DNA of 64,000 bases, from sequence record PP886230.1. The stretch is one strand, 5' to 3'. Within the stretch, counting starts at the first letter, position 1. The number at the start of each line of letters is the position of its first letter. Below, in pieces: positions 7,502-63,960 of the stretch. Below the pieces are notes generated by a model. The model was not told where the DNA came from and did not search any database. It saw only the letters and a program-made list of their open reading frames with translations. The translations under genes were made by a program, and so were the position numbers.

Positions 7502-7536
7502 AAGTATAATGCCTTATAAAATAAAAAGAGGTTGCT

Positions 7537-8313: not shown

Positions 8314-8324
8314 GGAGATAATGA

Positions 8325-10432
<2,108 letters not shown>

Positions 10433-10459
10433 CTTAAACGACCTTATGGAGTTATTAAA

Positions 10460-10996: not shown

Positions 10997-10999
10997 CAC

Positions 11000-11542: not shown

Positions 11543-11555
11543 GGAGAATCAACAC

Positions 11556-13073: not shown

Positions 13074-13095
13074 TAACTAAAAGGATTTATTTAAA

Positions 13096-14076
13096 ATGGC
13101 TAAAAAAATTAATGAAGCACAAGTTAAAATCGATATCGCAGGTTTAGAATCTGATGATTTGGAAACTCTATCACGTATGTTAGCTCTTGCTGGTCAAGCT
13201 GAACGTCAAGACCCAGTAGTTGCCGCTCCAGTACCATCTATGGGGTCTATGACTCCATCTCTTCCACCTATTGCTCCACTAGATCTCGATTCTATTGGTG
13301 CTGAAGAAGAAATTGGTGGAATTGAAACTTCAGTTGAAGACCCACTAGCAGCGGCAGTTGATGATCTTTCCGCTGATGTTGGTGATTTTGGTGCTGACAC
13401 AGATGAAGTTAGTATGGATGCTGAATTTTCAGAACCAGGTGTAGAAGGTGAAGAAGATTTTTCTCTTGACCTTAGTGGTCAACCTCAACTAGAATCAGTT
13501 GAAGAAGACGATGAGGAAGAAGAAGAAATTATTGAAGAAGAATTCGATTTTAGTCGTATGCTATCTCTTGCTGGTATTAACGAAGAAGAAGACGAAGATT
13601 TTTCAGTAGAGGGTAATCCTGCTACCGATAAAGAAATGAAAGATACCCAATTTCTACCAGATCTAAGTATCTCTGAAGATGAAGAACCATCTAACAGTAC
13701 TGATTATGGTCCATATGAAACAGAAGCTGATGCCGTTCGTGATGGTCAACTAAAGACTAATGGTGTTGAAGGTGACCATTTTGTTGTAATTGCAAAAGGC
13801 AATCAATTTTATTGGAGACGTGTTGTAGATGAAGATCTTGACAATCGTCCAGAACCTGAGTATTATGATAATGAAGGGAACGAAAATCGTGTTCATAAAT
13901 TTGAACCAAAATTCCCAGGCACTGCATTAGGAGATAACCCACTAAATGTTAATGAAAGTGAAGAAGATGATTCACCTGAAGGTAACATTGACTTGGAAGA
14001 TGATTCTGATGAAGAAGTAGAAGATATTTTTGAAAGTCTCCAAGAAAAATACAAGAAATTTTTAGGAGACAAATAA
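13096..14076 (+). CDS. highly acidic putative prohead core/scaffold-like protein
   Basis: very D/E-rich; RMLALAG and RMLSLAGINE repeats; INEA, LES, VNES, IFES motifs. Confidence 0.6.
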   Translation: MAKKINEAQVKIDIAGLESDDLETLSRMLALAGQAERQDPVVAAPVPSMGSMTPSLPPIAPLDLDSIGAEEEIGGIETSVEDPLAAAVDDLSADVGDFGADTDEVSMDAEFSEPGVEGEEDFSLDLSGQPQLESVEEDDEEEEEIIEEEFDFSRMLSLAGINEEEDEDFSVEGNPATDKEMKDTQFLPDLSISEDEEPSNSTDYGPYETEADAVRDGQLKTNGVEGDHFVVIAKGNQFYWRRVVDEDLDNRPEPEYYDNEGNENRVHKFEPKFPGTALGDNPLNVNESEEDDSPEGNIDLEDDSDEEVEDIFESLQEKYKKFLGDK

Positions 14077-14077
14077 T

Positions 14078-14473
14078 ATGCAATATAATTATCGTGAACT
14101 AGTTGAAGCGTTAGACGAAATTACCGGAAGAGATGAAGACGAAAGTTTTTCAGTTGAAGTTGAATCCGATGTTGTAGCAGTTGATGTTCTTAAGGATATT
14201 ACCAAATGTCTTATTGATATTGTTGATAAGATTAAATCTGGTGAAGACCAAAAAGAAATTGTAGATAAACTACAAAAAGCCTGTGACATTTTGTCTGACA
14301 TTCGATATAATGATGAAAGTACTGAAGTTGCTGATGAAGAAGTGTTGGAAGCCATTGCAGGTTGTTTTGGAACTGAAGGTATGGGACCAACAATTGACAA
14401 AGAAGGCGTACAACACTATAATGAGCCTGGTGCACCATCATATGCTGCACGTCAAGGTTTTGTTGGAGACTAA
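14078..14473 (+). CDS. acidic hypothetical protein
   Basis: GGAG SD, tight coupling to neighbours, LVEA/VLEA motifs. Confidence 0.6.
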   Translation: MQYNYRELVEALDEITGRDEDESFSVEVESDVVAVDVLKDITKCLIDIVDKIKSGEDQKEIVDKLQKACDILSDIRYNDESTEVADEEVLEAIAGCFGTEGMGPTIDKEGVQHYNEPGAPSYAARQGFVGD

Positions 14474-14476
14474 TAT

Positions 14477-14857
14477 ATGTTTCCAGAACCATCACATAAC
14501 AGTACTGAATATCAAAATAATGTACTTTCCAAAGTTAGGGAAGTACATGAATCAGATTCAGAAATAACAGACCGTATGCTTCTGATGTCAATTTTTGAAA
14601 ATTTCAGAACTGGCGGTGGTTTACGTCTTAGCAAGTTTGGGTATGGAATTTGTAAAGAAAATAATCTTTATGAATTTACCAAAATCCCCTTGCAAAGAGA
14701 ATTTAAAAGTTCTATAATGTTTACATCACTTGACAGAATATGTACTTCACCTTATTATGTTGAAGGTCAGTACATATATCTGACAGATGCAATGATAATA
14801 ACTGAATTAACATTGTGTTGTGATGATTTTAAACAGTTATTTTCTATTCATATGTAA
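14477..14857 (+). CDS. hypothetical protein (126 aa)
   Basis: GGAG SD; last gene before the 310-bp non-coding promoter block. Confidence 0.6.
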   Translation: MFPEPSHNSTEYQNNVLSKVREVHESDSEITDRMLLMSIFENFRTGGGLRLSKFGYGICKENNLYEFTKIPLQREFKSSIMFTSLDRICTSPYYVEGQYIYLTDAMIITELTLCCDDFKQLFSIHM

Positions 14858-14880
14858 GAAAAATGAATTAAAAATAAATG

Positions 14881-14908
14881 TTGACAAGATAGAATGATGT
14901 GATACAAT
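14881..14908 (+). promoter_or_regulatory. sigma70-type promoter P1
   Basis: TTGACA-N16-TACAAT with TG extension. Confidence 0.75.
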
Positions 14909-14972
14909 AAGCATCAGACATAAAGTTTTCAAGCGACACAAGATGTGAGTTTGAAAAAAAAGAAAAAAGTGA

Positions 14973-15000
14973 TTGACAAGTTGAAACGATGTGATATAAT
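14973..15000 (+). promoter_or_regulatory. sigma70-type promoter P2
   Basis: TTGACA-N16-TATAAT with TG extension. Confidence 0.85.
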
Positions 15001-15099
15001 GTTCACATCAAGACAGCAAAGAGATTTACCTTTTAAACACACGGATGATTCATGAAGTAACAAAGGAACTGATAAGTTAAATTATTTTAACACAGTTCC

Positions 15100-15128
15100 T
15101 TTACTTTTGCCCACGGATTGGCTATAAT
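15100..15128 (+). promoter_or_regulatory. sigma70-type promoter P3
   Basis: TTTACT-N17-TATAAT, 41 nt upstream of the AAA gene ATG. Confidence 0.6.
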
Positions 15129-15169
15129 AGAAACTTAAACGATTTTATCCAACAAAAGGAAATATATAC

Positions 15170-16495
15170 ATGACTACTCAAAACGATATCCTGAACGTTA
15201 AACTGACTCCAAAGAAAGCTAAAGAAGCAATGGCACTAGCTGACATGATTCAAGATAGCCTGATGATTTGGGGTAGCCCAGGTATCGGTAAGTCTGCAAT
15301 CGCTCGTCAATACGCTGATGAAAATTACCCACTGCGTAAAGATAACGTAGCTAAAATCGAGTTCATGAAACAACAAATCGAAGCTGACCCTGAAAATGCT
15401 GATCAGCTACGCCGTGAACTGGCTGCATTTGAAGCAAAACTAATCGACCAAGATACTAACTTTATCGATTTCCGTTTGTCTCAAATCGAACCAAGTGACC
15501 TTCGCGGTATTCCAGTACCAGAGAAGCTTTTCCGTAAAACTGACGGTTCTCTTCTGAAAGAATCTGAGCTTGCCGAAGCAAAAGATTATGTAGCTGAAAC
15601 TGCGGTAGTATGGGCTGCACCTAAAGTTCTGAAATTGTCCGAAGATTGGAAAGGTGTTATTCTGTTTGACGAAATTAACTCTGCAATGCCTATTGTTCAG
15701 GCAGCGTCTTATCAGCTAATCCTCGACCGTTGTGTTGGTGAGATGAAGCTACCTAAGACTGCACTGATTCTTGCAGCAGGTAACCGTGAAACTGATGGCG
15801 GTGTAACTTTCTCTCTTGCTACACCACTGCGTGACCGTATGACTCACATTGAGATGATTCCTTATCATCAAGATTGGATTAACGATTATGCGATTGCAAA
15901 ACGTTTGAACCCAGCAACTGTTGCGTTCATCAACAACACTGGTTCTAAGTACTTTAACACACTTAGTCCACAAGATCCTTCTCACAGTGGTGGTACTTCT
16001 CCACGTTCATGGGAAGCAGTAGCACGCTACGAAGATCTCAAGAAAACTAAGACAATTGATAAAGAAGTGTTCCGTGCAATGATTGCTGGTCGTGTTGGTG
16101 AAGGTGTTGCAACTGAATACATTGAGTACGTTGAGAACGTTGCTAAATTACCAGATACTATGTCTATTCTGTCTGGTGAAATCAAAGAAATCGACGCAAC
16201 GCTGGATATTTCTGCGAACTACTTTATCACTCTGAACTTGGTTTATAAAATTATCGACCTGTTCAATGAGAAGCAAGAACAACGTCTACCAGTGGAAGAA
16301 TGGGGTAAACTGTGTAACAACTTCATCACCTTCCTAGACCATAACTTCTCTGCAACTCAAGCAGAACTGGCAGTACTGGCAATTCGTACCATCACGCTTC
16401 ATAAGGTTGCGATTTCCATTAAAGATGTACCAGCGTTTAAAGATTTCATCGCTAAGTACTCTGATCTTGTACGTAAAGCACGCTCTCTTGGCTAA
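15170..16495 (+). CDS. MoxR-like AAA+ ATPase
   Basis: Walker A WGSPGIGKS, DFRLSQIEPSDLRGIP, Walker B ILFDEINSA, AAGNR, PLRDR, SPRSWE; adjacent to a vWA gene. Confidence 0.85.
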   Translation: MTTQNDILNVKLTPKKAKEAMALADMIQDSLMIWGSPGIGKSAIARQYADENYPLRKDNVAKIEFMKQQIEADPENADQLRRELAAFEAKLIDQDTNFIDFRLSQIEPSDLRGIPVPEKLFRKTDGSLLKESELAEAKDYVAETAVVWAAPKVLKLSEDWKGVILFDEINSAMPIVQAASYQLILDRCVGEMKLPKTALILAAGNRETDGGVTFSLATPLRDRMTHIEMIPYHQDWINDYAIAKRLNPATVAFINNTGSKYFNTLSPQDPSHSGGTSPRSWEAVARYEDLKKTKTIDKEVFRAMIAGRVGEGVATEYIEYVENVAKLPDTMSILSGEIKEIDATLDISANYFITLNLVYKIIDLFNEKQEQRLPVEEWGKLCNNFITFLDHNFSATQAELAVLAIRTITLHKVAISIKDVPAFKDFIAKYSDLVRKARSLG

Positions 16496-16509
16496 TTAAC
16501 AAAGAGTTG

Positions 16510-16545
16510 TTGACAAGAAGGATGCCTAATGGTATCCTTCTTTTA
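16510..16545 (+). promoter_or_regulatory. sigma70-like promoter overlapping a terminator hairpin
   Basis: TTGACA (16510)-N17-TATCCT; hairpin aagaaggatgcc-taat-ggtatccttctt then ttat. Confidence 0.55.
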
Positions 16546-16569
16546 TCTTAACTAAACGAGGAAATATAC

Positions 16570-17994
16570 ATGTCAGATAACAAATCTACTTCAAGATTCA
16601 ATGAAGTATCTCCGACACTCCAGAAAGAATGTCAAGAACGTCTGGTTCTGGCTCGTACATCTTTGATGTTAACTGCACCATTCTTTGGTGTACTCGCTTC
16701 ACGTTTACGTCCAGTTCCTAATAATACATGGTGTCGTACTCTAGCAGTGGATGGTAAACATCTATTCTACAACGTAGAATTTGTAATGGGCATTCAAGAC
16801 CCATCTAAAAAGAAAGAATATGAAGAAGCTATTCGTGAAAAGCACCCTGAAGTTACAGACGAACAATTAAAAGAAATGACTGAAGGTTTGACTGATGAAA
16901 ACCTTGTTGCTGTAATTTGTCATGAAATTCTACACTGTGCTTACGATCACTTCCTTCGTCGTGGTATGCGTGATCCACAACGTTATAACCGTGCAGCGGA
17001 TTATGCCATTAACCAAATCATCGTTCGTGAGAAAATTGGGAAAATCCAAAGTTCATGGTTGTATGATAAAAAATATGAAGGCATGACCGCAGAAGAGATT
17101 TACATTCTTCTTGAAGAAGAAGAACAAAAAGAAGATGGTGAAGGTGAAGGTCAACCACAAAGTGGCGGCGGTGAAGGTGAAGGTAAAAATCGCGGTACTT
17201 TTGGCGATATTAAAGATGGTAAGGGTAAACCAAAAGGTACTACCATTGACCAGCATGACGTTCCACAAGAAGGTCAAGAGGGTGGTTCAAGTGAACAGCA
17301 AAAACGTGATTACATGGATGATTTCAAAACAGCAATGATGAATGCTGCTCGTGCAGGTGGTACACCAGCAGAAATCGCTCGTATGATTAACAACTTTAAA
17401 GAACCAAAGATTGACTGGCGTTCAAAACTTCAACGTACACTTCGTAGTTGGTTGAAGTCTGATGCAACATATCAAAATCCGAATCGTCGTTCTTGGGGTG
17501 CTGGTTTTGGTTCTAATGGTTCATTCTATGGTAATCCAATTTACCCAGGGATGAAACCAGATGATGATATTGATATTGCGATTGCACTAGATGCTTCTGG
17601 GTCTATTTCTGAAGATATGCTTCGTGATTTCATTAGTGAAGTTCTTGGCATCACTAAACAATTCAAACAGTTTAAGATTCGTATCATGACTTTTGATACT
17701 GAAGTTTATACTGTAAAGGATTACAAAACTGGCGAAGAACGTAAGATTCTGGAATATCCAGTAAAAGGTGGTGGTGGTACTGACTTTGAAGCAGTATGGG
17801 TTCATATGAAGAACGACAACTACAAGCCTAAACAGCTTGTAATGTTTACTGATGGTGAACCGTGGCAGTCATGGGGTGATCCAAACTACTGTAAAACACT
17901 GTTCGTGATTCACAGTAACCCAAATAAAGTTGCACCATTTGGTGAGACTGTACACTACGAATATGAAGCTGATAAAAAGCGTCAACGTAGTTAA
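16570..17994 (+). CDS. HEXXH metallopeptidase-like plus vWA (MIDAS) protein, DUF2201-type
   Basis: TLAVDGKHLFYN, HEILHCAYDHFLR...YNRAADYAIN; G/E-rich linker; DASGS MIDAS, GGGTDF, FTDG. Confidence 0.85.
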   Translation: MSDNKSTSRFNEVSPTLQKECQERLVLARTSLMLTAPFFGVLASRLRPVPNNTWCRTLAVDGKHLFYNVEFVMGIQDPSKKKEYEEAIREKHPEVTDEQLKEMTEGLTDENLVAVICHEILHCAYDHFLRRGMRDPQRYNRAADYAINQIIVREKIGKIQSSWLYDKKYEGMTAEEIYILLEEEEQKEDGEGEGQPQSGGGEGEGKNRGTFGDIKDGKGKPKGTTIDQHDVPQEGQEGGSSEQQKRDYMDDFKTAMMNAARAGGTPAEIARMINNFKEPKIDWRSKLQRTLRSWLKSDATYQNPNRRSWGAGFGSNGSFYGNPIYPGMKPDDDIDIAIALDASGSISEDMLRDFISEVLGITKQFKQFKIRIMTFDTEVYTVKDYKTGEERKILEYPVKGGGGTDFEAVWVHMKNDNYKPKQLVMFTDGEPWQSWGDPNYCKTLFVIHSNPNKVAPFGETVHYEYEADKKRQRS

Positions 17995-18004
17995 GTACTA
18001 AATA

Positions 18005-18035
18005 AAGAGAACGGAATTTTCCGTTCTCTTCTTTT
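18005..18035 (+). terminator. intrinsic terminator
   Basis: aagagaacggaa-tt-ttccgttctctt-ctttt. Confidence 0.8.
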
Positions 18036-18041
18036 ATAAGT

Positions 18042-18069
18042 GGGACAACTTATAAAAATATGATATAAT
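18042..18069 (+). promoter_or_regulatory. pre-replicative promoter of the 16-bp family
   Basis: GGGACA-N16-TATAAT with TG extension; -35 flanked by the 10-bp inverted repeat ttttataagt/acttataaaa. Confidence 0.65.
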
Positions 18070-18103
18070 AGTTAATGTACCAATATACATGGAGAGTATT
18101 AAA

Positions 18104-18349
18104 ATGGAACAAGAAAATAATCAAATTCAACTAACCCTTCTAGACCTAATCAATGCTGCAAAAATCATGGAAGCTGCTGTTGCACGAAACACCTTTAAAG
18201 TTGAAGAACTTGTTGAGGTTGCTCCAGTTGTATCTAAATTTGTTTCTTTTGCAAATGTAGCTCTTGAAGATATTAAAGCACAAGAAGATGCAGCTAAAGA
18301 AGAAGCTGAATCACAAGATAGTGAAACTCAAGAAGATAAAGGAGAATAA
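18104..18349 (+). CDS. hypothetical protein
   Basis: GGAG SD at 18091 favours ATG 18104; acidic tail. Confidence 0.65.
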   Translation: MEQENNQIQLTLLDLINAAKIMEAAVARNTFKVEELVEVAPVVSKFVSFANVALEDIKAQEDAAKEEAESQDSETQEDKGE

Positions 18350-18351
18350 TT

Positions 18352-19008
18352 ATGGCAGCTATTCGTCATGTTGGTGTAATGCGTAATACAGGTTCTCGTG
18401 TTTTTGTTGTTTGGCGTTCACTACCAGATGATCCTGAACACTGCCTTATCGTTTATCGTGATTCACTACCAGAAGCATATGTTCACGCAGTAACTGATAT
18501 TGTTATGGGTCATGGTCAATCTAATATTGATTTGTGGGAAGTAATGCATAAAATTGGTTATCTCGATGGACGCAAAATGCTAGATGTTCTACACAACATG
18601 CAGCATCTACGTCGCGTTCGTACTTGTGACATTGATATGCACACTGGTGGTAATAATAAAATTTCTCTTGATGTTCTAAACAAAGCATTAGATGAAAATC
18701 AAGCGAAAGTACAAGAAGATGGTAAAGTAAAAGACTTTAACCCATTCAATCCACAAGAAGCGGACACTAAAGTAGAAGAAGCTACTATTGTAGAACAACT
18801 TCTCACTGATGCACAAAAATATGAAAAACTGGCTAAAGAACATTATGAACGTGCATACAATTTAGAGCCAAGCTTGCGTCCGCAAACACAAGTTGTTGAA
18901 CAACCGAAAGATAGTAAAACAATTTATCTAGAAATTCCAGAAGGTATTTCACAGACTAAAGCTATTGAGAAAGTAAAACAACTATTTGCAGAACGTAAAG
19001 CAAAATAA
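18352..19008 (+). CDS. hypothetical protein
   Basis: GGAG SD; RHVG...VWRSLPDDPEHCLIVY pattern; no function assignable. Confidence 0.65.
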   Translation: MAAIRHVGVMRNTGSRVFVVWRSLPDDPEHCLIVYRDSLPEAYVHAVTDIVMGHGQSNIDLWEVMHKIGYLDGRKMLDVLHNMQHLRRVRTCDIDMHTGGNNKISLDVLNKALDENQAKVQEDGKVKDFNPFNPQEADTKVEEATIVEQLLTDAQKYEKLAKEHYERAYNLEPSLRPQTQVVEQPKDSKTIYLEIPEGISQTKAIEKVKQLFAERKAK

Positions 19009-19011
19009 AAT

Positions 19012-19605
19012 ATGAAAAAGAATGAATTAGATGAAGCAATTAAAGGTTTATCTAATGTATGTTTTAGTGGCGGGGCAGCAGGTGCTGACCGCCTTTTTTC
19101 TATCTATGCAAAAAATAATGGATTTGAAGTTATTAATTTTTCATTCAAAGGTCATGAGCATAGTGTAGATGAAAGTACTATATTAGAAATACCATCCAAT
19201 ATTCTATCTGATATTTCTATATTAAATCAACTAAACATTGCATGTTACTCGTTGCAGCGAAAAGTACCAAAGCCTGGTTCTTATGTTTACAACTTACTTG
19301 CAAGGAATAGTTATCAGATACTTAATACAGAAAGAATATATTGTATTGCAAATATCACATCACCAACTAAGGTAAGTGGTGGTACTGCATGGGCAGTACA
19401 GATGTATATGGATTCAGTTGAAAATCCTGAAATTTATTGTTATGATATGAATTCACGTTCAGTATTTTATTTCGATACAGTACTGAAAGAGTTCACACAA
19501 ACATTCGTCGTTCCAGCACCACATGGTAACTGGACTGGTATTGGTTCACGCAATGCCACCGAAAAACATATGGAACATTTTATTACATTTTTCAAGGAAG
19601 AATAA
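19012..19605 (+). CDS. SLOG-superfamily protein (circularly permuted motif order)
   Basis: SGGAAGAD at the N-terminus, LLARN, SGGTAWAV, and WTGIGSR at the C-terminus. Confidence 0.65.
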   Translation: MKKNELDEAIKGLSNVCFSGGAAGADRLFSIYAKNNGFEVINFSFKGHEHSVDESTILEIPSNILSDISILNQLNIACYSLQRKVPKPGSYVYNLLARNSYQILNTERIYCIANITSPTKVSGGTAWAVQMYMDSVENPEIYCYDMNSRSVFYFDTVLKEFTQTFVVPAPHGNWTGIGSRNATEKHMEHFITFFKEE

Positions 19606-20534
19606 TGAAACAACTACAAGAACTATATCAAAAAATTCTAGATGAAGGCGTAGAAAGCGTTGACCGTACTGGTGTTGGAACAATCAAACTTATCGGTCAA
19701 CAAATGCGTTTTGACCTTAAAGATGGTTTCCCAGCAGTGACGACAAAACGTCTAGCTTGGAAAGCAATGACTTCAGAATTACTATGGTTTATTGAAGGTT
19801 CCCATGATGAGCGTCGCCTTTGTGAAATTTTGCATGGAACTCGTGATACAGAAAAGAAAACTATTTGGACAGATAATTACCTAAATCAAGGCGTTGCTCT
19901 TGGTTATACTGATGGTGAGTTAGGTCCAGTGTATGGTAAGCAATGGCGTGAATGGGAAGATTATAAATTTAGTTCCAGTACTGAAGAAATTCAAGAATTA
20001 AAAGATAAAGGATACAAAGTTATCGATTATACTGGTTCACATGGTGTTGTTATGAAACGTACAACTGACCAATTACAAGAACTAATCAAAGGTATAAAGT
20101 CCGATCCATATGGCCGTCGCCACATTCTAAGTGCATGGAACGTTGGTGAGCTTGATGATATGACGTTACCACCTTGTCATAGCTTTGTGCAATTTTGTGT
20201 AGTGCAAGGGAAACTAAGCTGTATTCTGCATCAACGCTCCGCTGATCTATTTTTAGGAGTTCCATTTAATATCAGTAGTTACTCACTACTAACTCATATG
20301 ATTGCACAAATTACTGGTTTAGATGTTGGTGAATTTATTTGGAATGGTGGTGATTGTCACATTTATAAAAACCACGTTGAACAAGTAAAAGAACAACTAC
20401 AGCGAAAACCTCGTGAATTACCTGAATTGTGGCTTGATCCTACAATTACTAATATTGAAGATTTCACTATGGATTCTTTTAAATTAGTGAATTACAACCC
20501 AATGCCAACAATTAAAGCACCTATGGCTGTATAA
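19605..20534 (+). CDS. thyA: thymidylate synthase
   Basis: DRTGVGT, ELLWFIEG, GPVYGKQWR, SAWN, catalytic LPPCH, QRSADLFLGVPFN, GDCHIY. Confidence 0.97.
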   Translation: MKQLQELYQKILDEGVESVDRTGVGTIKLIGQQMRFDLKDGFPAVTTKRLAWKAMTSELLWFIEGSHDERRLCEILHGTRDTEKKTIWTDNYLNQGVALGYTDGELGPVYGKQWREWEDYKFSSSTEEIQELKDKGYKVIDYTGSHGVVMKRTTDQLQELIKGIKSDPYGRRHILSAWNVGELDDMTLPPCHSFVQFCVVQGKLSCILHQRSADLFLGVPFNISSYSLLTHMIAQITGLDVGEFIWNGGDCHIYKNHVEQVKEQLQRKPRELPELWLDPTITNIEDFTMDSFKLVNYNPMPTIKAPMAV

Positions 20535-37511: not shown

Positions 37512-39001
37512 TCTGTGTCCTTATGTATGCGATAAACAGTATTAGGTTTAACTGCGTCATGTAATGGAACTTTGTTATCACTATTTACAAACTGTGTAAG
37601 TGCTAAGTCTGCACCTTCCCACGGTTTTCTTCCACCATAATCAAAAATAACCCATGAATTCTTAGTTGCATTGAATTCCCATAACGTAACTGGAGTATAA
37701 TCGGTGCGATAGAAATAGTCACCATCTACTGCATCAGTTGGGAACATATTTCCTTCAGGGACTGTACCTCGTGCTGGTGGAATTTTAGGACGATAATCTT
37801 GTTGCGAATCAATATTACCATATACACAATTGGACGTGAATGGTTCATTGACATAAGTTACCTTTGGTTCCCCCCACTTGTCATCATTATACTGATAAAT
37901 GTGTGGTTCTTTATAAAAAATACAAAAATCTTCCACATCTTCTGGTGGAACATCACTGGTAGTATATTCTACATCACAATTTAACCATTTTTTAGCACTT
38001 TTATCATATTGATACAACGTATAACCTGTCACATCTGCGTCATTTTCTTTAAAGAAGAAGTCACCATCCATTGGTTTTATGGGAAAGATGGTTCCACGCT
38101 TGACTTCCACAGAAATCCATGTATCATTAACAAACTCTTTGAGTACTGGGTATGTTTTTTTCAAAAAATACATTCCATCGGCAGGTTCTTCTGGAAAATC
38201 ATAACCGTTAAGCATATATTTTGATAAATCTACTGTATCAGGTCGATCATCATACAAATGTTCATTTGTATAATGAATATAGGGTACTTCATCATCAGCT
38301 TGCATGATGATACGGTTCATGATATCCATTTCATTGCCATAGTTACTGTTTTCCGACGAACCATCATCGGTATTTCCATTACCATTATTAGGGTCATCTG
38401 GATTATCAGGATAATTATTGTTACCGAGTAAATCGGAGTACTCAGGTGAGTCGGTTAGCGGTTTAACTCTAAGTTTATAAATGTGATGTTGCCACGTAAC
38501 CGAGTATCCCTCAGATGTACGAAATGCATCTTGGACGACATAGAAGCGGTTTAGACCTGTATCTTTACCCAATACATCAAAATCACGTAAATTTGGTAGT
38601 TCTATCACATCCCCTGGCATGATTTTTCTACCTAAACGCTGCATCATTGTATTATAATGGATTGTGATGTCCATAGTGTTGAAATTAAAGAACAATCCTG
38701 GGATTTTCAAGTCTGGAGTTGCTTCTTGAACTTGATAGACACAACTAAGTGTGATAGCTTCAAGGTTGTAGTTTCTGTTTGGTGTGTCACCAAAAATTAA
38801 ATCGCCAATACTTGACACAACTGATCCTGAAGATGTATAATCACCTCCATAGGATAAGTCAGTGTTGTCAGCAACTTGTTTTGGACCGACATATGCATAA
38901 AGCCACATGTCAACTCCACCAATGTTGTATTGTTCAGCAATGGCAGAATCAATGAACTTGTAATCATTGGTTCTACCTTTTTTCCACATTCTATATGTCA
39001 T
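37508..39001 (-). CDS. gp14: neck protein (T4 gp14-like) with repetitive C-terminal extension
   Basis: DYKFIDSAIAEQYNIGGVDM, DLIFGDTPNRNY, LGRKIMPGDVIELP; FP..P.DG.YF repeats; GGAG SD favours ATG 39001. Confidence 0.75.
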   Translation of the reverse strand: MTYRMWKKGRTNDYKFIDSAIAEQYNIGGVDMWLYAYVGPKQVADNTDLSYGGDYTSSGSVVSSIGDLIFGDTPNRNYNLEAITLSCVYQVQEATPDLKIPGLFFNFNTMDITIHYNTMMQRLGRKIMPGDVIELPNLRDFDVLGKDTGLNRFYVVQDAFRTSEGYSVTWQHHIYKLRVKPLTDSPEYSDLLGNNNYPDNPDDPNNGNGNTDDGSSENSNYGNEMDIMNRIIMQADDEVPYIHYTNEHLYDDRPDTVDLSKYMLNGYDFPEEPADGMYFLKKTYPVLKEFVNDTWISVEVKRGTIFPIKPMDGDFFFKENDADVTGYTLYQYDKSAKKWLNCDVEYTTSDVPPEDVEDFCIFYKEPHIYQYNDDKWGEPKVTYVNEPFTSNCVYGNIDSQQDYRPKIPPARGTVPEGNMFPTDAVDGDYFYRTDYTPVTLWEFNATKNSWVIFDYGGRKPWEGADLALTQFVNSDNKVPLHDAVKPNTVYRIHKDTE

Positions 39002-39003
39002 GA

Positions 39004-39071
39004 TTGTCTCCAAAATAAATCGGGTATATCTTTATTTACCTTGTAGACAAACCGTAAGAATGTGATATAAT
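39004..39071. promoter_or_regulatory. bidirectional element: minus late promoter (39033-39038) and plus TAGACA-N16-TATAAT (39044-39071); anti-SD arm for gp14
   Basis: TATTTA-N5-TAGACA-N16-TATAAT; ttgtctccaa (39004-39013) versus ttgtagacaa (39041-39050) is a 9/10 inverted repeat. Confidence 0.7.
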
Positions 39072-39111
39072 GTTTATTAATTAGAGTGACGTGAATCACA
39101 TAGGAGAATAC

Positions 39112-55951: not shown

Positions 55952-55987
55952 AAAGATATCCTCGTTTTATTTATAGTACTAAAATAT

Positions 55988-58651
55988 TTATTGACATGCC
56001 TCTAAACGACGAGCCATTAACTCAGCACGGCGAGTAGTTTGGCGATACCAAGCTGAATTACGTATTTGAGCAGCAGCTTGTTTATAATTACCTTTAGCTA
56101 ATTCAGACAACATAGTTTTAAATTTAAGTACCCCACCTTTACCCATCTGGAATACCATTTGGCATAGTACTTGTTGAGCCAAATAAGGTGTTTTCATGTT
56201 GTATGAAGCATAAATTGATTTAGCATCATATATAGCTTTACTACTATCACGAACTAACATATCGTTGGCTTGCTGTTCAGTTATTCCATCTGAAAAGTTT
56301 TCACCACTAATAATTAAGTGACCATAACCAATAGTTGGATACCCACGACTATCCAAATAACGCCAGAATTTACCATTACGATAATATCCTTTTGCTTGTT
56401 GGTATTGTAATGTACCTTCATATTCTTTTAATTCAGAAATAAATTGTGCATCACCTGGAACAACTTTCCAATCGATTGCAGTTTTATCAACATTTCCAAT
56501 ATTATAGGTAGGTTGCTCCACCGGAGTTGTTGAAGCTCCACTTCTCTGTGTTCTTCTCCTACGAGGCACATGACGAGAACCACGTTGAGAATATCCAGTA
56601 CCTATCGTTTTGATTTTTGTTGTAACTACCAATTCATCACTATCAACTGAAGGTTGTACAACTGCTTTTGGAGCAGATTGATTAGTTGCTTGACCACCAA
56701 TTAATGTTTTATTCGCCGCATCAGACCCTGTTCCTGTTTGTGAAGCATAAAATAATCCTGGGTCAACAGAACCACTGAATCCAAGAACATTTGCTGATGT
56801 AACACGAATTTCAAACTGTATGACACCATTTGCTTTTCCAACAACTTGACCTTTTTGAACAACATCTTTGTTTAATAAATCAGATTGAATATTATAAAAA
56901 ATAGATTTATATCCAGACTTATGTTGTATTAAAAGAGCACCATTAGTAATTACTACCACACCACCATCTGGTGCAACTACATCACCTTTACATTGTATTT
57001 CCCAACCTGAACGGTCTGCCTTTCCTCCACTTTGTGTTGGAACACCTTTCCCCCAGTAACCATATTGTCGAATAGTGCCGCTACATGGCATTAACATATG
57101 TAAACCTTCATATGTAATACTATATCCAGTCATCCCAGGATCAGATGTCATCAAATCTTGTGATTGAACTTGTTCAGTTTCTGATGTATAGTTAACAAAC
57201 TGAACAGCTTCAGTGTCTTGTGCTACGGGTAATTCTGGTGATACATCATTTGCTGGTTGTGGTTGTACTGGTGATTCACTAGAACCACTTCCACCACCTT
57301 GTCTTGGTGGTTCAACATAACTACCATGATTTTCAGCGTTAACCCATGCAGCAATATCATGAATGTGTTCATTAAGACCAGCAGATGGTGTTCTAAAGTT
57401 TGGTGCAGTAAATTCAGCAGTACCGCTATTACCACCACTATTAACTGTTAATGTTTGACCACCACCACTAATAATTGCTGATGATGATCCAATTAGGTTT
57501 GCAGATGTTGCGGCAGAAATAGAAGCATTTGAACCAGCCGTAATATCAGTACTGCTACCACTTTGCATACGTAATGATGCAGCAGTAACTAAACGAAGGT
57601 CTGCCCCAGAATTAACAACAACTTGTCCACCAACTTTTGCATCAAGAGCACCAATTAGATCTAATTTAGTATTTGCACCAACTCGTGCATTGAAATCTTG
57701 TCCGGTTTCAATATTATATGAACGTCCAGCAGTAATATTAATATCTTGACCAGCACGAATATTAATATTCTTATCACAGTGCATGTCAATATCACCTTCA
57801 CCAGTGAATTTTATACGTGCAGTGCCATCACGGTTAATTAAAAGAACATCACCAGTAGCTTCTGATAAAAGAAGTTGTGCACCACTACGTGTTTTTATTA
57901 CGACACCTTCATTTTTACGAGAACCAACACGTGTATCGTTTACTGGGTTATTAAATTGTGTATCTTGATATCCATCTGGGTCTTGATCCCACGTTGGTGC
58001 TGTTAATTCCTCTTCAGTATATCCATCATCAATAATAAAACTATTACCACGTGGCGAAGACATACCATATACAGTACTGGTGGTTTGTCGAGTACTACTA
58101 CGATTCGCCAACCCAGCTTCTTCGTCATATAAAAGGTTTTGCTTTTTAAGACCTGCGATAATTGGAACGTTAGCATATTTGTCTTGCATATCGGTAGTGA
58201 TAGTGTTACGATCATAGTCAGTAACAGGAAGTGGCATATCAGTTCCACCATAATTACTTACTTCAGTTGCCATACCTGGAACCATAGTATTCATACGCTG
58301 GTCATATACACAACCAATCCAATATGCTTGGAATGTACGGGCTTGTGCAAAAATTACAACAACTGTACACCCTACGTCTGGTGGTACTGCCCAAAAACCG
58401 TATCCTTTTGGATATTGACCATATGCATCAGCACTTGGAATACCTGGTGTTTTACCAGCAAAAGGAGACATGTAAGATGCTTCTATCCATGATTCTTTTG
58501 AGTTTTTATCACTTTGAGAACCTTGTATCCAAACTTTCAGTTTTCCTGATTTAGTTGGATCTCTGTTATCCATAACAGTTGCTAACTGCGGATAAGATGG
58601 GTCAAAACGACCCAACTGCTGTTGTGCATACTTTTTACTTGTATCTGCCAT
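55988..58651 (-). CDS. gp5: baseplate central spike (gp5-like): OB fold, beta-helix with HxH apex, degenerate M23-like domain and C-terminal lysozyme
   Basis: DPTKSGKLKVWI, YGFWAVPPDVG, INIRAGQDINITAG repeats, NEHIHD, VQKGQVVG, ELKEYEG...YLDSRGYPTIGYGHL. Confidence 0.85.
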   Translation of the reverse strand: MADTSKKYAQQQLGRFDPSYPQLATVMDNRDPTKSGKLKVWIQGSQSDKNSKESWIEASYMSPFAGKTPGIPSADAYGQYPKGYGFWAVPPDVGCTVVVIFAQARTFQAYWIGCVYDQRMNTMVPGMATEVSNYGGTDMPLPVTDYDRNTITTDMQDKYANVPIIAGLKKQNLLYDEEAGLANRSSTRQTTSTVYGMSSPRGNSFIIDDGYTEEELTAPTWDQDPDGYQDTQFNNPVNDTRVGSRKNEGVVIKTRSGAQLLLSEATGDVLLINRDGTARIKFTGEGDIDMHCDKNINIRAGQDINITAGRSYNIETGQDFNARVGANTKLDLIGALDAKVGGQVVVNSGADLRLVTAASLRMQSGSSTDITAGSNASISAATSANLIGSSSAIISGGGQTLTVNSGGNSGTAEFTAPNFRTPSAGLNEHIHDIAAWVNAENHGSYVEPPRQGGGSGSSESPVQPQPANDVSPELPVAQDTEAVQFVNYTSETEQVQSQDLMTSDPGMTGYSITYEGLHMLMPCSGTIRQYGYWGKGVPTQSGGKADRSGWEIQCKGDVVAPDGGVVVITNGALLIQHKSGYKSIFYNIQSDLLNKDVVQKGQVVGKANGVIQFEIRVTSANVLGFSGSVDPGLFYASQTGTGSDAANKTLIGGQATNQSAPKAVVQPSVDSDELVVTTKIKTIGTGYSQRGSRHVPRRRRTQRSGASTTPVEQPTYNIGNVDKTAIDWKVVPGDAQFISELKEYEGTLQYQQAKGYYRNGKFWRYLDSRGYPTIGYGHLIISGENFSDGITEQQANDMLVRDSSKAIYDAKSIYASYNMKTPYLAQQVLCQMVFQMGKGGVLKFKTMLSELAKGNYKQAAAQIRNSAWYRQTTRRAELMARRLEACQ

Positions 58652-58664: not shown

Positions 58665-60914
58665 TTAATCAACTATACTATCGTGACGTTTGAGTGCACG
58701 AATTACAATTGCAGCTTGAATTTGTTGTGTAAAAGAACCACCTGCACCAAAATCATGAACAATTTTATTAACACGATAAATTGTTTGGTTAAATGTGGTT
58801 GGTGTATTAATATCCAAAACACCAGTGTTATCATTTATTGATATTACTGGTTGTAATTTTAGTAATAGATACGCTTCAGATGTTATATAATTTGCTACAT
58901 GATAATCATCTGGGTTAATTTCCATATCTTCACCATTAATTACTTGTTCTAGATATTGTAAGTAAGAGTAATCACTCCACCCTAACCAGTACGGGTCACC
59001 TACTACACGCATATCGAGTTTACACAAAAAAGGTCTATTGTAATAATTGTCACGTATTTTACGTCTATCCATTTCATATGTGCTGCTGTTATCGTTTAAC
59101 GAAGCGGATAAAGTTGTTTCATTGTTAGTTGCTTCGGTTGGCATTGTGAACACTTCACCATAACGGTGACCAACACCATCAGTGCCACCATCGTTTTCTT
59201 CATAAGTGGTTACATAATCTTCAATATATTGAGGTAAAACATTGACTTGATAGTTATTATAACGGTCTTGTTCTTCTGCGTTACCAACCTGCATTTGATT
59301 TTTTGCTAAAGTTTCAACTTCAGTTAACAATTGTTGTTGGGCTTGTGTTAACATCCCTCCTAAATCACGAGTTACACGTAAATCACTTGTTTTTGCCCAT
59401 GCGTCTGGTATACTATTGTATTGTACACCTTGAATATTGAGTTCTTGGGATGTATGTGTACCTGCATGGTTCGCTACATCTTGTATCGGACCAGGGTTAC
59501 GTGTAGTGGCTACGAAAAATTGCTGATCAAATTTCAAATCCAAATCAAGTATCTCACTATTAAGCCCACTAAATTGATAATTATAAGTTTTCATGTTTAT
59601 TTTTGGTTTTTGATCATTAGGATCTACGTATTTTTCTGCGTTCTCAAAAAAGTACTCAAATGTGAAATTTTCAGGTTGTAAATCCGATTCATGAACAATA
59701 TCACCTATTTTAAATCTAACAATATAAAAAATTACTTTATAAACAGAAGTATTACGATAATTATCAAAACCAACGTATTGTTTAACTGGTATAATGTTTA
59801 CAAATTGACGCACACTAGTACTATCATCGGCTTGTACAGTACATGTATCAATAACGTCATCAATAATTCGAGATATAGGAGTACTTGGGTTCCATGAAAA
59901 GTTTTTAGAACCTTGTGCACCACTTTTAGTTGTTCCGGCCTCTGCCATTTGTTTAGAATCATAGTTTATAAACAAATCTTGCAAATCAGGTGCTACTTTA
60001 AATTCGAAAAATTTACCTTCGGATAATTCACCAAATTTATATCTAAGATAACCATATTGTTGGTCAGCCATCTGATTTAATTTATCTTCTAAATCAAAGC
60101 AGAAGTCACCAAAGTTTTCAGCAGTACAATTGAATGGTTCTTTTAAGGTCCATTCAATGTTATCAACTAAAGCTGCTCTATTATGAACTAAGTTCATAGT
60201 ATACATCATAGTACTACCACTTTGTGAAGCACTTGCAGTAACACTATTAATTTTAACTGACCAGCGTCTTGTTGTTTCTGGGATAATTTCAGGTATTCCA
60301 TTTTTATTAAAGCCAATAAACTTTAATTCCAAGATCAATGGCAAGTCCATAAATTTATGATATCTAAGTTTGTTACTTAACGAAATTAATTCATCATATA
60401 GACTCATACTATTATTTTCAGACATATTAAGTACTGCTGTATTAAAACAATAGTTTGTTGTCATTCCTGGTGTTGAAGGTCCAGCTTGTGTCATTTGTAC
60501 ACTAGTGATATTATATTTGCCAGTAACACCACTTTCTGATATCACATGTCGTTGCACTTCTGCATCTGGGTAAAGCCAAAAGTTTTTAAAATCATCTTTA
60601 TCTAAGGCAAATAAACAAAAGTGCCAAGTTGGGTTATCATATTTCAATAATTTATTGTCATACGGTATTACAAACTGACTTAAATCGAGATCTTCATAAA
60701 CTTGATCAACACTAGCACTTTGTTTTGGTAATGATACTACATTACTTACATTTGCTTTGTAATTATTTTTTGTAATAGTTTTTACATCATTTTGTAATGT
60801 ATTTGCTGTAGCTTTCAAACTATCAAGTGCATTAGATGTAGTGGTTTTAGCCTTACCAGTAATACTTGTAATATCATTTTGAAAATTATCAACTGTACTT
60901 CGTAAATCTGCCAT
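58665..60914 (-). CDS. putative baseplate hub protein
   Basis: KTYNYQFSGLNSEILDLDLKFD and LDMRVVGDPYWLG motifs; lies between gp53 and gp5. Confidence 0.55.
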   Translation of the reverse strand: MADLRSTVDNFQNDITSITGKAKTTTSNALDSLKATANTLQNDVKTITKNNYKANVSNVVSLPKQSASVDQVYEDLDLSQFVIPYDNKLLKYDNPTWHFCLFALDKDDFKNFWLYPDAEVQRHVISESGVTGKYNITSVQMTQAGPSTPGMTTNYCFNTAVLNMSENNSMSLYDELISLSNKLRYHKFMDLPLILELKFIGFNKNGIPEIIPETTRRWSVKINSVTASASQSGSTMMYTMNLVHNRAALVDNIEWTLKEPFNCTAENFGDFCFDLEDKLNQMADQQYGYLRYKFGELSEGKFFEFKVAPDLQDLFINYDSKQMAEAGTTKSGAQGSKNFSWNPSTPISRIIDDVIDTCTVQADDSTSVRQFVNIIPVKQYVGFDNYRNTSVYKVIFYIVRFKIGDIVHESDLQPENFTFEYFFENAEKYVDPNDQKPKINMKTYNYQFSGLNSEILDLDLKFDQQFFVATTRNPGPIQDVANHAGTHTSQELNIQGVQYNSIPDAWAKTSDLRVTRDLGGMLTQAQQQLLTEVETLAKNQMQVGNAEEQDRYNNYQVNVLPQYIEDYVTTYEENDGGTDGVGHRYGEVFTMPTEATNNETTLSASLNDNSSTYEMDRRKIRDNYYNRPFLCKLDMRVVGDPYWLGWSDYSYLQYLEQVINGEDMEINPDDYHVANYITSEAYLLLKLQPVISINDNTGVLDINTPTTFNQTIYRVNKIVHDFGAGGSFTQQIQAAIVIRALKRHDSIVD

Positions 60915-60925
60915 ACGTTACTCCA

Positions 60926-61240
60926 TTAGCCTATGTTTCGAGTACCATTAAGATAATTCTGTACTCTTTGATTTGCTGGTATTCTAATTGTTACTCCACT
61001 TTTAAAATTATATATAGGATCTTCTCCTAGTATATCTGGATTTAACAATGCGAAAATATAATATAAGCGTTCATTACCATACATTTCGTATGCTAAACGC
61101 CAAGGTTGATATTCATATTTCAATGGGATCTCATAAAAATCATCAGTATCAGCCGGAACAATATCACGTGGTAAATTATACCCAAGATACCATGTTTGTT
61201 TCACCTTAGCGTAAGGTGAGTATTGACTATAGTTGGACAT
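60926..61240 (-). CDS. gp53: baseplate wedge protein (gp53/LysM-like)
   Basis: YQPWRLAYEMYGNERLYYIFALLNP...DPIYNFKSGVTIRIP. Confidence 0.8.
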   Translation of the reverse strand: MSNYSQYSPYAKVKQTWYLGYNLPRDIVPADTDDFYEIPLKYEYQPWRLAYEMYGNERLYYIFALLNPDILGEDPIYNFKSGVTIRIPANQRVQNYLNGTRNIG

Positions 61241-61971
61241 TAAATGAATCCTCCTTTACGTAATAGTTCACCACGTTTGAATGCATTGAGGTTGAACGTT
61301 TTAGTCATATAATCCGATGTTGGTTGTTCTTCAAGTTGTAACATAACTGAGATTTTTTGTGGAACCCAAACTTCATCTTGTGGGTTCATATATCCAGTAC
61401 TTCTAAGTTGTTCGAAGAATTTTCTACTATCCATGTCGGATAAATTAAAAGTACTATCGCTACTATTCAACGGAACTTGAATATAAGAAACATCATTTGG
61501 GTAAGTAAAATTATAAGATTTTAAAATAACAGGAATATCATTATATGTATAACGACCATATCCACTTAGAAGTAAGATTGGTGGTGGTGCACCTGCAATT
61601 GCGAGTTCGGGGTTATTAGCCGAAGCAGCTTGTCTACCAAAATCCATCAACGAAACAGAACGTATAAAATGAACACATGCCAACGCATACATAGCTTCTG
61701 CTGCGGTATTCGCATAAAATTCACCCTGAATCGTGAAAACTGTATTAGTAGTGTTCTTATAGTTGTTATAGTTACTGTTAGTATGTATAGGGGACTGTGT
61801 TTCATACTGAATTGACCTTTGTTCAGTAATTGTTGGTGTTACAGTCCAAACCAACCCATTAGTTGGACGCAGAAACGAAAGTAGAGTTGGTTCGGAGCTA
61901 TCTCCAAAATCACCATATACATAGTTAGCACCTGCGGCTTTAGGTCGTAATCGAATTCTACGATCAATCAT
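61240..61971 (-). CDS. baseplate tube cap / tube-fold protein (gp48-like)
   Basis: PPPILLLSGYG...IPVILKSYNFTYPNDVSY, VPQKISVML; GGAG SD (61982-61985) favours ATG 61971 over the track start 62061. Confidence 0.65.
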   Translation of the reverse strand: MIDRRIRLRPKAAGANYVYGDFGDSSEPTLLSFLRPTNGLVWTVTPTITEQRSIQYETQSPIHTNSNYNNYKNTTNTVFTIQGEFYANTAAEAMYALACVHFIRSVSLMDFGRQAASANNPELAIAGAPPPILLLSGYGRYTYNDIPVILKSYNFTYPNDVSYIQVPLNSSDSTFNLSDMDSRKFFEQLRSTGYMNPQDEVWVPQKISVMLQLEEQPTSDYMTKTFNLNAFKRGELLRKGGFI

Positions 61972-62006
61972 CTTTTTGATTCTCCATAATAAGGGAACAT
62001 TTGATG

Positions 62007-62071
62007 TATTTATACGTGGGACAAACTGCTTTTTGGTGCTATAATAACATTGATGGTACAAGGATTGTACC
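62007..62071. promoter_or_regulatory. bidirectional element: minus late TATAAATA (62007-62014) and plus GGGACA-N16-TATAAT (62018-62045); leader hairpin 62055-62071
   Basis: TATTTA-N5-GGGACA-N16-TATAAT; ggtacaa-gga-ttgtacc. Confidence 0.75.
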
Positions 62072-62102
62072 TATTGGATTTAAACATGGAGAGTAAAATA
62101 CA

Positions 62103-62942
62103 ATGACAAATAGACCAAAGCGTAAAAAGTATCTCAATAATGCTGATTTACTTCGTGAAATACAAAAAAGTAAAATTTCATATTGCTGGTTATTAGACAA
62201 ATCATATAGTATGTATGATTATATTGTTTTTCATGAGTCAGAAATTACTGCTGAGTTACTAGAAAAAGCTAAGGCAGCCCGAATTAAACGACTGAACAAT
62301 GAAATGCTTGATAGTATTCGTGAAAAGGAAAATATGAGTGCTAAAAAAGCTAAAGAATATGCAGATGAACACAATTTAGTTATCACTGACGTTCCAATTG
62401 ATGAAGTTGTTATTCGTGTTATTACAGATGAACATATTCCACCAGATACTAGAGTTAACTTTGAACCATTCAAGCATTATATTGTAGATAATGAAGGTAT
62501 TCTCTATGAAGTTTGTCGTTCTCACTGGAAAGGCGACCTTGAAACTGGTGAATTCAGTACTGTTCATGGTAAAATTACAAATGAACTTGGGAAGATGTTC
62601 ATTAAACTTGCAGAGGAAATCTCACACAAATCTAATTACAGAAACTATACATACTTAGATGAAATGATGGGTGATGCAAGAATACAATTAGTTAAAAACG
62701 CACTTCTCTTTAAAGAGAGCATTCTTTATAAAAAAGATAAACCAGCAGTTCAGCTAAATCCTTTCTCTTACTATACATCATTCGTAAACAATAGTTTTCG
62801 TTCTATATTGAATAGTGAGAAAAATGTTCGAAATATACGTGATGATTTACTTGAAATGCATGGCTTTACGCCATCACATACACGTCAAATTGAAATTGAA
62901 TTGAACATGATTGAAAGGAAAAATGAAGATGGCTCTGTTTGA
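62103..62942 (+). CDS. gp55: late-transcription sigma factor (T4 gp55-like)
   Basis: YLNNADLLREI, LGKMFIKLAEEISHKSNYRNYTYLDEMMGDA, NPFSYYT....NSF..IL..EK. Confidence 0.85.
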   Translation: MTNRPKRKKYLNNADLLREIQKSKISYCWLLDKSYSMYDYIVFHESEITAELLEKAKAARIKRLNNEMLDSIREKENMSAKKAKEYADEHNLVITDVPIDEVVIRVITDEHIPPDTRVNFEPFKHYIVDNEGILYEVCRSHWKGDLETGEFSTVHGKITNELGKMFIKLAEEISHKSNYRNYTYLDEMMGDARIQLVKNALLFKESILYKKDKPAVQLNPFSYYTSFVNNSFRSILNSEKNVRNIRDDLLEMHGFTPSHTRQIEIELNMIERKNEDGSV

Positions 62943-63960
62943 TAAAGCAATTACATTCACTGATATTCATTTAGGTTTAAAGAATAACAGCAAGCAACAC
63001 AATGAAGATTGTTTAAACTTCATTAAATTCATGATTGAGGTAGCTAAAAAAAATAATATCAAAGTTTGTGTTTTTATGGGAGATTATTTTCATAATAGAA
63101 GTAATATCAATATCCAAACACTAAACTATGGTTTACAAATTCTTCAATTATTAAATGATAATTTTGAAAAAGTATATTTTTTAGTAGGCAACCATGATAT
63201 GTATCATAAAAACAAACGTGATATAACAAGTATCAATATGGCTCAAGTTTATGAAAATATAGAATTCATTAATGAAATTACAACATTTGATGATTGTACT
63301 TTCATTCCATTTATGATTGAAGATGAATATAAGTTGTTACCTCAACTAAAAAGTAAGTATGTTTTTGGTCACTTAGAGTTACCAGGTTACTTGCTTAACA
63401 AGATGGTAGAAATGCCTGATCATGGAAAAGAAACAGAAGGTTCTTTTGGTGGTTGTGAGTATGTTTTTAGTGGGCATTTTCATAAAAGGCAGTCAAAAAC
63501 AACTTCAAAAGGAACTCGTGTAGTTTATACTGGTAATTGTTTTCCACATAATTTTTCCGATACATGGGATGATGCAAGAGGTGTGATGATTCTTGAACAT
63601 GGAAAAGAACCTATTTTCAAGTCATGGGATAATGCACCAAAATATAGAACATTCACACTTTCTGAATTGTTGACTGATCCAAGCTATTATCTACAAGATA
63701 ACACAATATCAAAAGTTCAAGTTGATATATCAATAACAACAGATGAGATTAGTTTTATTCGTGATACATTTACTAAACTTTACAACATTAGAGAGTTTAA
63801 TGTTGTAACGAGCAAGCAAAGTATCGCAGAATTAATTGAAGATGGTGTTAGTTTTGAAAGTACTGAATCAGTTGATGAGATAGTTTTACAGCAAATTATG
63901 GAAATTGATTCACCAATGTTTGATAAAAATCTTCTAATCCAAATTTACAGATCGTTATAA
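62929..63960 (+). CDS. gp47: recombination nuclease subunit (T4 gp47 / SbcD/Mre11-like)
   Basis: TDIHLG, GDYFHNR, VGNHD, GHLEL, FSGHFH metallophosphoesterase motifs. Confidence 0.9.
   Translation: MALFDKAITFTDIHLGLKNNSKQHNEDCLNFIKFMIEVAKKNNIKVCVFMGDYFHNRSNINIQTLNYGLQILQLLNDNFEKVYFLVGNHDMYHKNKRDITSINMAQVYENIEFINEITTFDDCTFIPFMIEDEYKLLPQLKSKYVFGHLELPGYLLNKMVEMPDHGKETEGSFGGCEYVFSGHFHKRQSKTTSKGTRVVYTGNCFPHNFSDTWDDARGVMILEHGKEPIFKSWDNAPKYRTFTLSELLTDPSYYLQDNTISKVQVDISITTDEISFIRDTFTKLYNIREFNVVTSKQSIAELIEDGVSFESTESVDEIVLQQIMEIDSPMFDKNLLIQIYRSL

Follow-up and report, generated by a model that had tools for sequence, protein, structure and literature searches.

The junction upstream of the late sigma factor gene in Escherichia phage vB_EcoM_E9.1 is probably best explained as a conserved bidirectional control region, in which the overlap of two promoters is mainly positional, occlusion of one by the other is possibly a secondary effect, and no dedicated regulatory device is involved. 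This compact region would join two temporal transcription classes in giant phages of the RaK2/121Q type. On the plus strand, a putative middle-type promoter, composed of a TGGGACAA-like box and an extended -10, would transcribe the operon of the late sigma factor and an SbcD/SbcC-like nuclease, and on the minus strand a T4-type late promoter (ATAAATA, -35-less) would transcribe a structural/baseplate operon. The tight overlap would arise mainly from the positional constraints that each promoter brings to a spacer of 110-135 nt, with occlusion by the late holoenzyme as a possible secondary contribution to shut-off of the sigma operon. Furthermore, a hairpin in the leader of the sigma mRNA may act post-transcriptionally, by stabilising the 5' end and/or by binding a protein that recognises GGA loops, for example host CsrA.

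The timing of gene classes in giant phages that use the host RNA polymerase is little understood, and the RaK2/121Q group has so far been known from in-silico promoter lists only. The gp55-like locus is the launch point of the late programme, and its promoter is the sole visible transcriptional entry to the late sigma gene. Middle and late signals fused in a conserved module, together with a sigma mRNA that begins with a structure-conserved hairpin, provide handles on the late switch. Should occlusion or gating by CsrA prove true, the phage would limit its sigma factor without a repressor, and host carbon-storage regulation would be linked to phage late development. Even if both fail, the junction offers a clean, well-kept example for promoter annotation in RaK2/121Q-type genomes, where current records place spurious small ORFs over promoters.

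The window is the whole 64,000-nucleotide stretch that was analysed, and its coordinates equal those of the E9.1 record minus 124000. Positions 60900-63000 are 100% identical to E9.1 (PP886230.1), a giant phage of ~350 kb in the RaK2/121Q group, and 87-99.9% identical to other ~350-kb myoviruses of the 121Q/PBECO4 group (genus Asteriusvirus). More distant relatives share the local arrangement of genes; their hosts are Klebsiella (RaK2), Cronobacter (GAP32), and Pectobacterium (CBB), as well as Yersinia, Serratia, Erwinia, Salmonella, and Xanthomonas. Conservation was assessed in 16 GenBank relatives and 19 IMG/VR loci, and the genome survey covered 316 of the 368 kb of the E9.1 record (record positions up to 100 kb and 124-340 kb). 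The features discussed below are the following.

39033-39071, plus strand: second copy of the module, with a minus-strand TAAATA box, 5 nt, TAGACA, 16 nt, and TATAAT with TG.
60926-61240, minus strand: gp53-like wedge gene, second in the minus-strand operon (weak Pfam Phage_gp53 match); it is followed, on the same strand, by a 749-aa structural gene.
61240-61971, minus strand: virion structural protein of 243 aa, first gene of the structural/baseplate operon (record annotation; PHROG 12050 at 2e-150).
62004-62096, plus strand: annotated 30-aa ORF lying over promoter and leader (public record annotation).
62007-62014, minus strand: late-promoter box TATAAATA, with the core ATAAATA running from 62013 down to 62007 (motif class and conservation).
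62017-62024, plus strand: -35-like box TGGGACAA of a phage-specific promoter class, class 2 (shared by 12 promoters; CBB/GAP32 class).
62037-62045, plus strand: extended -10, TGcTATAAT (16-nt spacing to GGGACA; 10/12 matches).
62055-62071, plus strand: 5'-terminal leader stem-loop of 7 bp with loop GGA, GGTACAA-GGA-TTGTACC (minimum-free-energy fold; covariation).
62084-62093, plus strand: ribosome-binding context ACATGGAGAG, a block nearly invariant in relatives, with a second GGA 26 nt past the loop GGA.
62103-62942, plus strand: gp55-like late sigma factor gene, 279 aa (PHROG 12791 at 3e-154; PHROG 234; tblastn).
62929-63960, plus strand: SbcD-like (gp47-like) nuclease subunit (annotation; Pfam Metallophos at 5e-9).

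A preliminary description of this DNA had proposed a composite of the form TATTTA-N5-GGGACA-N16-TATAAT, with an exact TATAAATA on the minus strand and a 7-bp hairpin downstream, and all three are present in the sequence as described. The composite occupies 62007-62045 (+), with TATTTA at 62007-62012, 5 nt (tacgt), GGGACA at 62018-62023, 16 nt, and TATAAT at 62040-62045, and 62007-62014 reads TATAAATA on the minus strand. That description had left out a TG at 62037-62038, which gives an extended -10, and an independent promoter scan likewise called a sigma-70-like promoter on the plus strand, with 10/12 matches and the TG. The flanking start codons lie at 62103 (+) for the gp55-like gene and at 61971 (-) for the divergent structural gene. 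With at most 2 mismatches allowed, the composite pattern matched three times in the 64-kb window against 0.00 expected; two of these matches sit at divergent junctions, and the third (18031) is not divergent. The argument from the same geometry at two loci stands in part: the second locus is kept across phages, but its copy has 2 mismatches, reads TAGACA, and carries only TAAATA, not TATAAATA, on the minus strand.

On the minus strand, the box belongs to a well-defined motif class. TATAAATA itself is rare in the 64-kb window (2 copies against 10.3 expected), and each copy stands just ahead of a baseplate gene on the minus strand. Its core, ATAAATA, occurs 55 times in 316 kb, compared with 147-223 for 7-mers of comparable composition, and 37 of the 55 copies (67%) are intergenic, though intergenic DNA makes up 9.8% of the sequence. 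The class is also oriented, 32 of the 55 copies lying within 60 nt upstream of a same-strand start as opposed to 3 in the opposite orientation. Among these 32 sites, the upstream columns are unconserved, with no -35 element, and A+T content reaches 78-91% at +11 to +13, traits that define the late promoters of T4 (PMC2988020). Being an oriented, intergenic, -35-less motif with AT-rich DNA downstream, the minus-strand box fits the T4 late type. Its distance to the minus-strand ATG is 35 nt, close to the class median of 33 nt (n=32 sites). Judged by its sequence, it is a bona fide late-promoter-type signal for the structural/baseplate operon, and the late promoter postulated earlier for this operon is borne out by the exact box, its position before the ATG, and its membership of an oriented class. 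ATAAATA upstream of structural genes has already been reported for CBB and GAP32 (PMC5259590). Within 55968-55991 (-), the second exact TATAAATA has another ATAAATA 17 nt upstream, and these tandem late boxes precede a baseplate hub gene (ATG 55951).

The plus-strand promoter also belongs to a class. A scan for TGnTA(T/C)AAT in record 124-240 kb returned 12 promoters, every one of them plus-strand, that share a G(G/A)GACAA-like box placed 13 nt before the TG. The majority precede DNA-metabolism genes, including those for DNA polymerase, ssDNA-binding protein, primase, and exonucleases. In CBB and GAP32, a "divergent RpoD-like" class with a non-TTGACA -35 box has been described, one copy of which lies just before the gp55-like gene (PMC5259590), and the record of Yersinia phage fHe-Yen9-03 annotates -35/-10 signals at the same spot. 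The 12 promoters of E9.1 correspond to this CBB/GAP32 class, and GGGACA is therefore to be read as a class signature, not as a degenerate TTGACA. Class-2 promoters could plausibly be recognised by the phage's own sigma-70-family factor, which has regions 2, 3, and 4 and whose gene lies in the early region (record 301352-302317). A T4 MotA-type middle promoter was considered by eye and rejected, as the spacing was unfit. Transcription of T4 gene 55 comes from a MotA-dependent middle promoter and from early read-through (PMC6024815). The motifs reported in the RNA-seq paper on the related phage PA5oct are sigma-70-like only.

Additional arrangements were seen around promoters elsewhere in the genome. 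The class-2 promoter at 18031-18069 (+) has its -35 box between the arms of a perfect 10-bp inverted repeat (18032-18057) and lies directly 3' of a terminator hairpin, so that it resembles a terminator-plus-promoter cassette. At record ~204923-204960, an 11-bp stem with a T-run directly follows a class-2 promoter before the DNA polymerase region and is a possible attenuator. In early-region intergenic DNA (record 1-20000), AGTACT recurs near TATAAT-type -10 elements and may be an early-promoter signature. Finally, record 328-340 kb holds ~10 tandem paralogous minus-strand genes annotated as "regulator of chromosome condensation" (RCC1-like).

The genes on the plus side of the junction agree with a late-sigma operon. 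By sequence comparison, the 279-aa product is a remote member of the gp55 family with an N-terminal extension of ~123 aa. Its residues 125-262 match PHROG 234, "late sigma transcription factor", at 8e-18, and residues 124-274 share ~27% identity with gp55 of T4-like cyanophages by tblastn. Searches of Pfam, NCBIfam, and PDB sequences, including one with a 13-sequence profile, returned no match, so the family homology is carried by the PHROG and tblastn results; for the N-terminal ~123 aa (62103-62471), no homologue was detected. The product of this gp55-family gene could be what recognises the late box. The genes 3' of the gp55-like gene encode SbcD-like and SbcC-like proteins, as anticipated when they were first described as 47 and 46. 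The SbcD-like gene overlaps the 3' end of the gp55-like gene and probably shares an operon with it, and the plus promoter plausibly drives the gp55-like sigma, SbcD-like, and SbcC-like genes together. The earlier proposal that this promoter drives gp55/47/46 is therefore plausible: no second promoter of the operon can be seen, and read-through from a plus promoter farther upstream is not expected because the upstream genes are on the minus strand. The annotated 30-aa ORF at 62004-62096 is probably no gene, neither its start codon nor its frame being conserved in relatives. A second tiny annotated ORF, at 38998-39099 (-), likewise lies over a promoter, as judged by position alone.

Comparison with relatives indicates that the module as a whole is conserved across genera. 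Among relatives whose protein identity is 68% or more (24 distinct sequences), the late heptamer is invariant (24/24), and every one keeps the class-2 box and leader hairpin. TATAAT is present in 21 of the 22 aligned distinct sequences, the remaining one reading TATACT, and the TG of the -10 is also found in 21 of 22, being absent in RaK2. Late heptamer and -10 hexamer are separated by 26 nt in 10 sequences, 27 nt in 9, and 28 nt in 5, and the flanks are looser, with ~22-44 nt from the minus start codon to the late box and 47-58 nt from the -10 to the plus ATG. The spacer between the late box and the class-2 box is 5, 6, or 7 nt among relatives. The strict N5 spacing asserted in the preliminary description, which was to be abandoned if it varied in relatives, therefore fails, and the overlap itself is retained. 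In Pseudomonas phage MIJ3 (40% identity), synteny and late box are preserved, and the plus promoter is of the TTGACT type and lies 22 nt away; the two promoters are spaced ~20 nt wider there.

The arrangement recurs beyond the sigma gene. The second copy of the module separates a ClpA-like protease gene (+) from a virion structural gene (-), at the junction 39001/39112, and this arrangement is conserved in 6 phages with a spacer of 5-7 nt. Two further junctions of E9.1 that pair a minus-strand late signal with a plus-strand class-2 promoter lack the tight overlap. At the exonuclease junction, the proximal late box is ~70 nt from the class-2 box, and a second ATAAATA lies 7-8 nt from that box. 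At the endonuclease VII junction of E9.1, late and class-2 signals are ~55 nt apart. The class-2 promoters at record 190738, 217663, and 227750 have no late box beside them.

The leader adds a further layer to the region. A 7-bp hairpin at 62055-62071 had been noticed in a single sequence, and it is now substantiated as a conserved RNA structure, with compensatory changes and folding in the minimum-free-energy structure of the E9.1 leader and of all 22 distinct relatives. Whole leaders are weak (-3 to -10 kcal/mol), and the single-sequence leader fold is no better than shuffles (z = -1.1), so that the support for the hairpin comes from covariation. Across the 22 distinct sequences, 80% of cells are paired compared with 35-53% in slid controls; five core pairs are paired in at least 95%, three pairs are of the G-C class in some sequences and of the A-U class in others, and one stem pair occurs as AU, UA, GC, and CG, although much of this covariation separates two clades and independent events are consequently few. 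G-U wobbles, for instance in the Munch group, are valid on the plus-strand RNA only, which, together with covariation under changing sequence, argues for RNA pairing and not for a DNA palindrome read by a protein. The first base of the hairpin is predicted to fall at +1 in most genera, in Asteriusvirus at +4, and a start at +1 or +4 is the geometry of a 5'-terminal stabilising stem-loop. Rfam covariance models gave nothing relevant at E <= 1 for 61900-62200.

A tentative and somewhat unlikely extension is that the hairpin and the ribosome-binding site form a two-site target of host CsrA, or of a similar phage protein, that gates translation of the late sigma factor by host physiology. The high-affinity consensus of CsrA is a short, variable stem whose loop presents GGA, and in the canonical mode of repression one hairpin site is combined with one site over the Shine-Dalgarno sequence (PMC2896534). 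In the sigma leader, the loop region matches the CsrA consensus at 10/12 positions and a second GGA follows 26 nt downstream, but the site at the Shine-Dalgarno sequence matches at only 7/12; these two are candidate sites by sequence geometry. GGA and the rest of the loop core stay constant as the stem covaries, which speaks for such a target, although the loop of the RaK2 hairpin has no GGA. A second leader points in the same direction: ahead of a PhoH-like gene (record 86624-86662), a 7-bp hairpin carries a loop region that matches the consensus at 12/12, with a second copy (10/12) over the ribosome-binding site 19 nt downstream, and GGA-loop hairpins with different stems occur at the PhoH-like leader in most relatives. 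Against this, ACA before the Shine-Dalgarno GGA is not enriched genome-wide (13/316), and the enrichment of CsrA-like motifs that is seen in leaders across the genome is uninformative because the motif resembles a Shine-Dalgarno sequence. We know of no phage late-sigma mRNA reported as a CsrA target. The context ACATGGAGA (62084-62093; also 18090-18099) recurs before other class-2 genes, and its conservation exceeds what a Shine-Dalgarno sequence alone needs.

How the two promoters interact depends on their spacing. With start sites placed 7 nt after each -10-type element, the predicted plus start lies near 62052 and the predicted late start near 62000 (-), ~51 bp apart, which would put the late box at about -45 to -38 of the plus promoter. 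In the activated late complex of T4, the clamp is at the upstream end, and crosslinks extend to -39 and -36/-35 (PMC2988020). If this footprint transfers, the late complex would cover the class-2 box and reach the -10, and, conversely, the late box would be hidden beneath a polymerase bound at the plus promoter. Given predicted starts ~51 bp apart, mutual exclusion of polymerases on one DNA molecule is plausible in both directions. The T4 footprints may not transfer, since a non-exhaustive search around the clamp loader of E9.1 revealed no recognisable homologue of gp33 or gp45, and none has been reported in CBB (PMC5259590). The RaK2/121Q group has no recognised gp33 or gp45, and the question may be raised whether the ~123-aa sigma extension substitutes for a co-activator.

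The preliminary description had taken this overlap as built-in negative feedback, in which the late-sigma holoenzyme on the minus-strand box blocks the promoter of its own sigma gene. That such feedback was selected is in our view unlikely, although several observations accord with it. The predicted starts are ~51 bp apart; the activated late complex of T4 reaches about -39; the overlap is kept in all relatives of at least 68% identity, with a length variation of just 2 nt; the sigma operon has no other visible promoter; and at the exonuclease junction, an extra ATAAATA stands beside the class-2 box despite the existing proximal late box. The variable spacer of 5, 6, or 7 nt, in place of a fixed N5, weighs against it, as do the signals ~55 nt apart at the endonuclease VII junction and the case of MIJ3, where synteny and late box persist with the -35 at 22 nt. 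Furthermore, closed late complexes of T4 bind weakly (PMC2988020), and sigma competition alone would shut off middle promoters anyway. The same module at the ClpA-like protease junction implies that the geometry is not specific to the sigma gene. Late boxes typically lie 30-46 nt before the start codon irrespective of the opposite neighbour, and because this typical distance falls inside a spacer of 110-131 nt, the overlap largely follows from compaction.

A combined form, in which the sigma factor is doubly gated, with the late holoenzyme at the abutting late box shutting its sole promoter (and likewise that of the ClpA-like gene) and host CsrA restraining the mRNA at the GGA-loop hairpin and ribosome-binding site, is distinctly unlikely; if true, it would tie the late switch to both sigma dosage and the physiological state of the host.

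The two promoters could instead cooperate, transcription from the middle promoter leaving negative supercoils that help to open the -35-less late promoter and so prime baseplate expression. This reading is attractive because basal gp55-dependent transcription in T4 needs supercoiled DNA, being much lower on relaxed DNA (PMC2988020), and it would suit a group in which gp33/gp45 co-activators are not detectable. Back-to-back promoters with different sigma factors can communicate via transcription-driven supercoiling (PMC5175336), but the published case concerns non-overlapping promoters, whereas the predicted footprints here collide. Late promoters without a divergent partner make up most of the 32, and we regard priming by supercoiling as very unlikely.

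It is highly improbable that the TATTTAT tract serves the plus promoter only, as an AT-rich, UP-like element, and is not a late promoter. The tract does lie at about -45 to -39 of the plus promoter, where other class-2 promoters have A-rich runs, but those away from divergent junctions have A-runs and never the TATTTAT heptamer, which is invariant in 24/24 relatives while adjacent bases vary and stands at a class-typical distance from the minus-strand ATG. Scarcely credible, finally, is a transcription attenuator/terminator or DNA operator at the leader hairpin, which a simple scan calls terminator-like with the tail TATTGGATTT, as the T-rich tail is absent in most relatives and the stem has only 3 G-C pairs.

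The conserved bidirectional control region favoured here has parallels in several known systems. The likeness to T4 late transcription includes an 8-bp box at -10, the lack of a -35 element, AT-rich DNA downstream, and a gp55-family sigma factor, and in both phages the sigma gene lies behind a middle-class promoter. Relative to the T4 TATAAATA box, 7/8 box positions are conserved in this phage group. While T4 gp55 works with gp33 and the gp45 clamp, neither of these nor MotA-box promoters have been recognised in E9.1, whose sigma factor has an extra ~123 aa at its N-terminus. Early transcripts also read through into T4 gene 55, which has no late operon diverging from it (PMC6024815), unlike the E9.1 gene. 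With the CsrA-repressed leaders of glgC and ColE7 cel (PMC2896534), the sigma leader shares a two-site geometry, although its downstream candidate site is a weak match.

The dmp system (PMC5175336) offers another parallel, since two sigma regulons meet there in one intergenic region and cross-talk occurs without a dedicated repressor; its promoters do not overlap and the effect is stimulatory via supercoiling, whereas in E9.1 the footprints are predicted to overlap, with inhibition as the proposed effect. Self-shut-off by such crowding would be physically plausible. The closest likeness is to CBB and GAP32 (PMC5259590), which belong to the same phage group, have ATAAATA before structural genes, and share the divergent RpoD-like class. 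The individual parts are therefore already known in relatives, and what is new with respect to that work is their back-to-back abutment, the recurrence at the protease junction, the conservation across genera, and the covarying leader hairpin.
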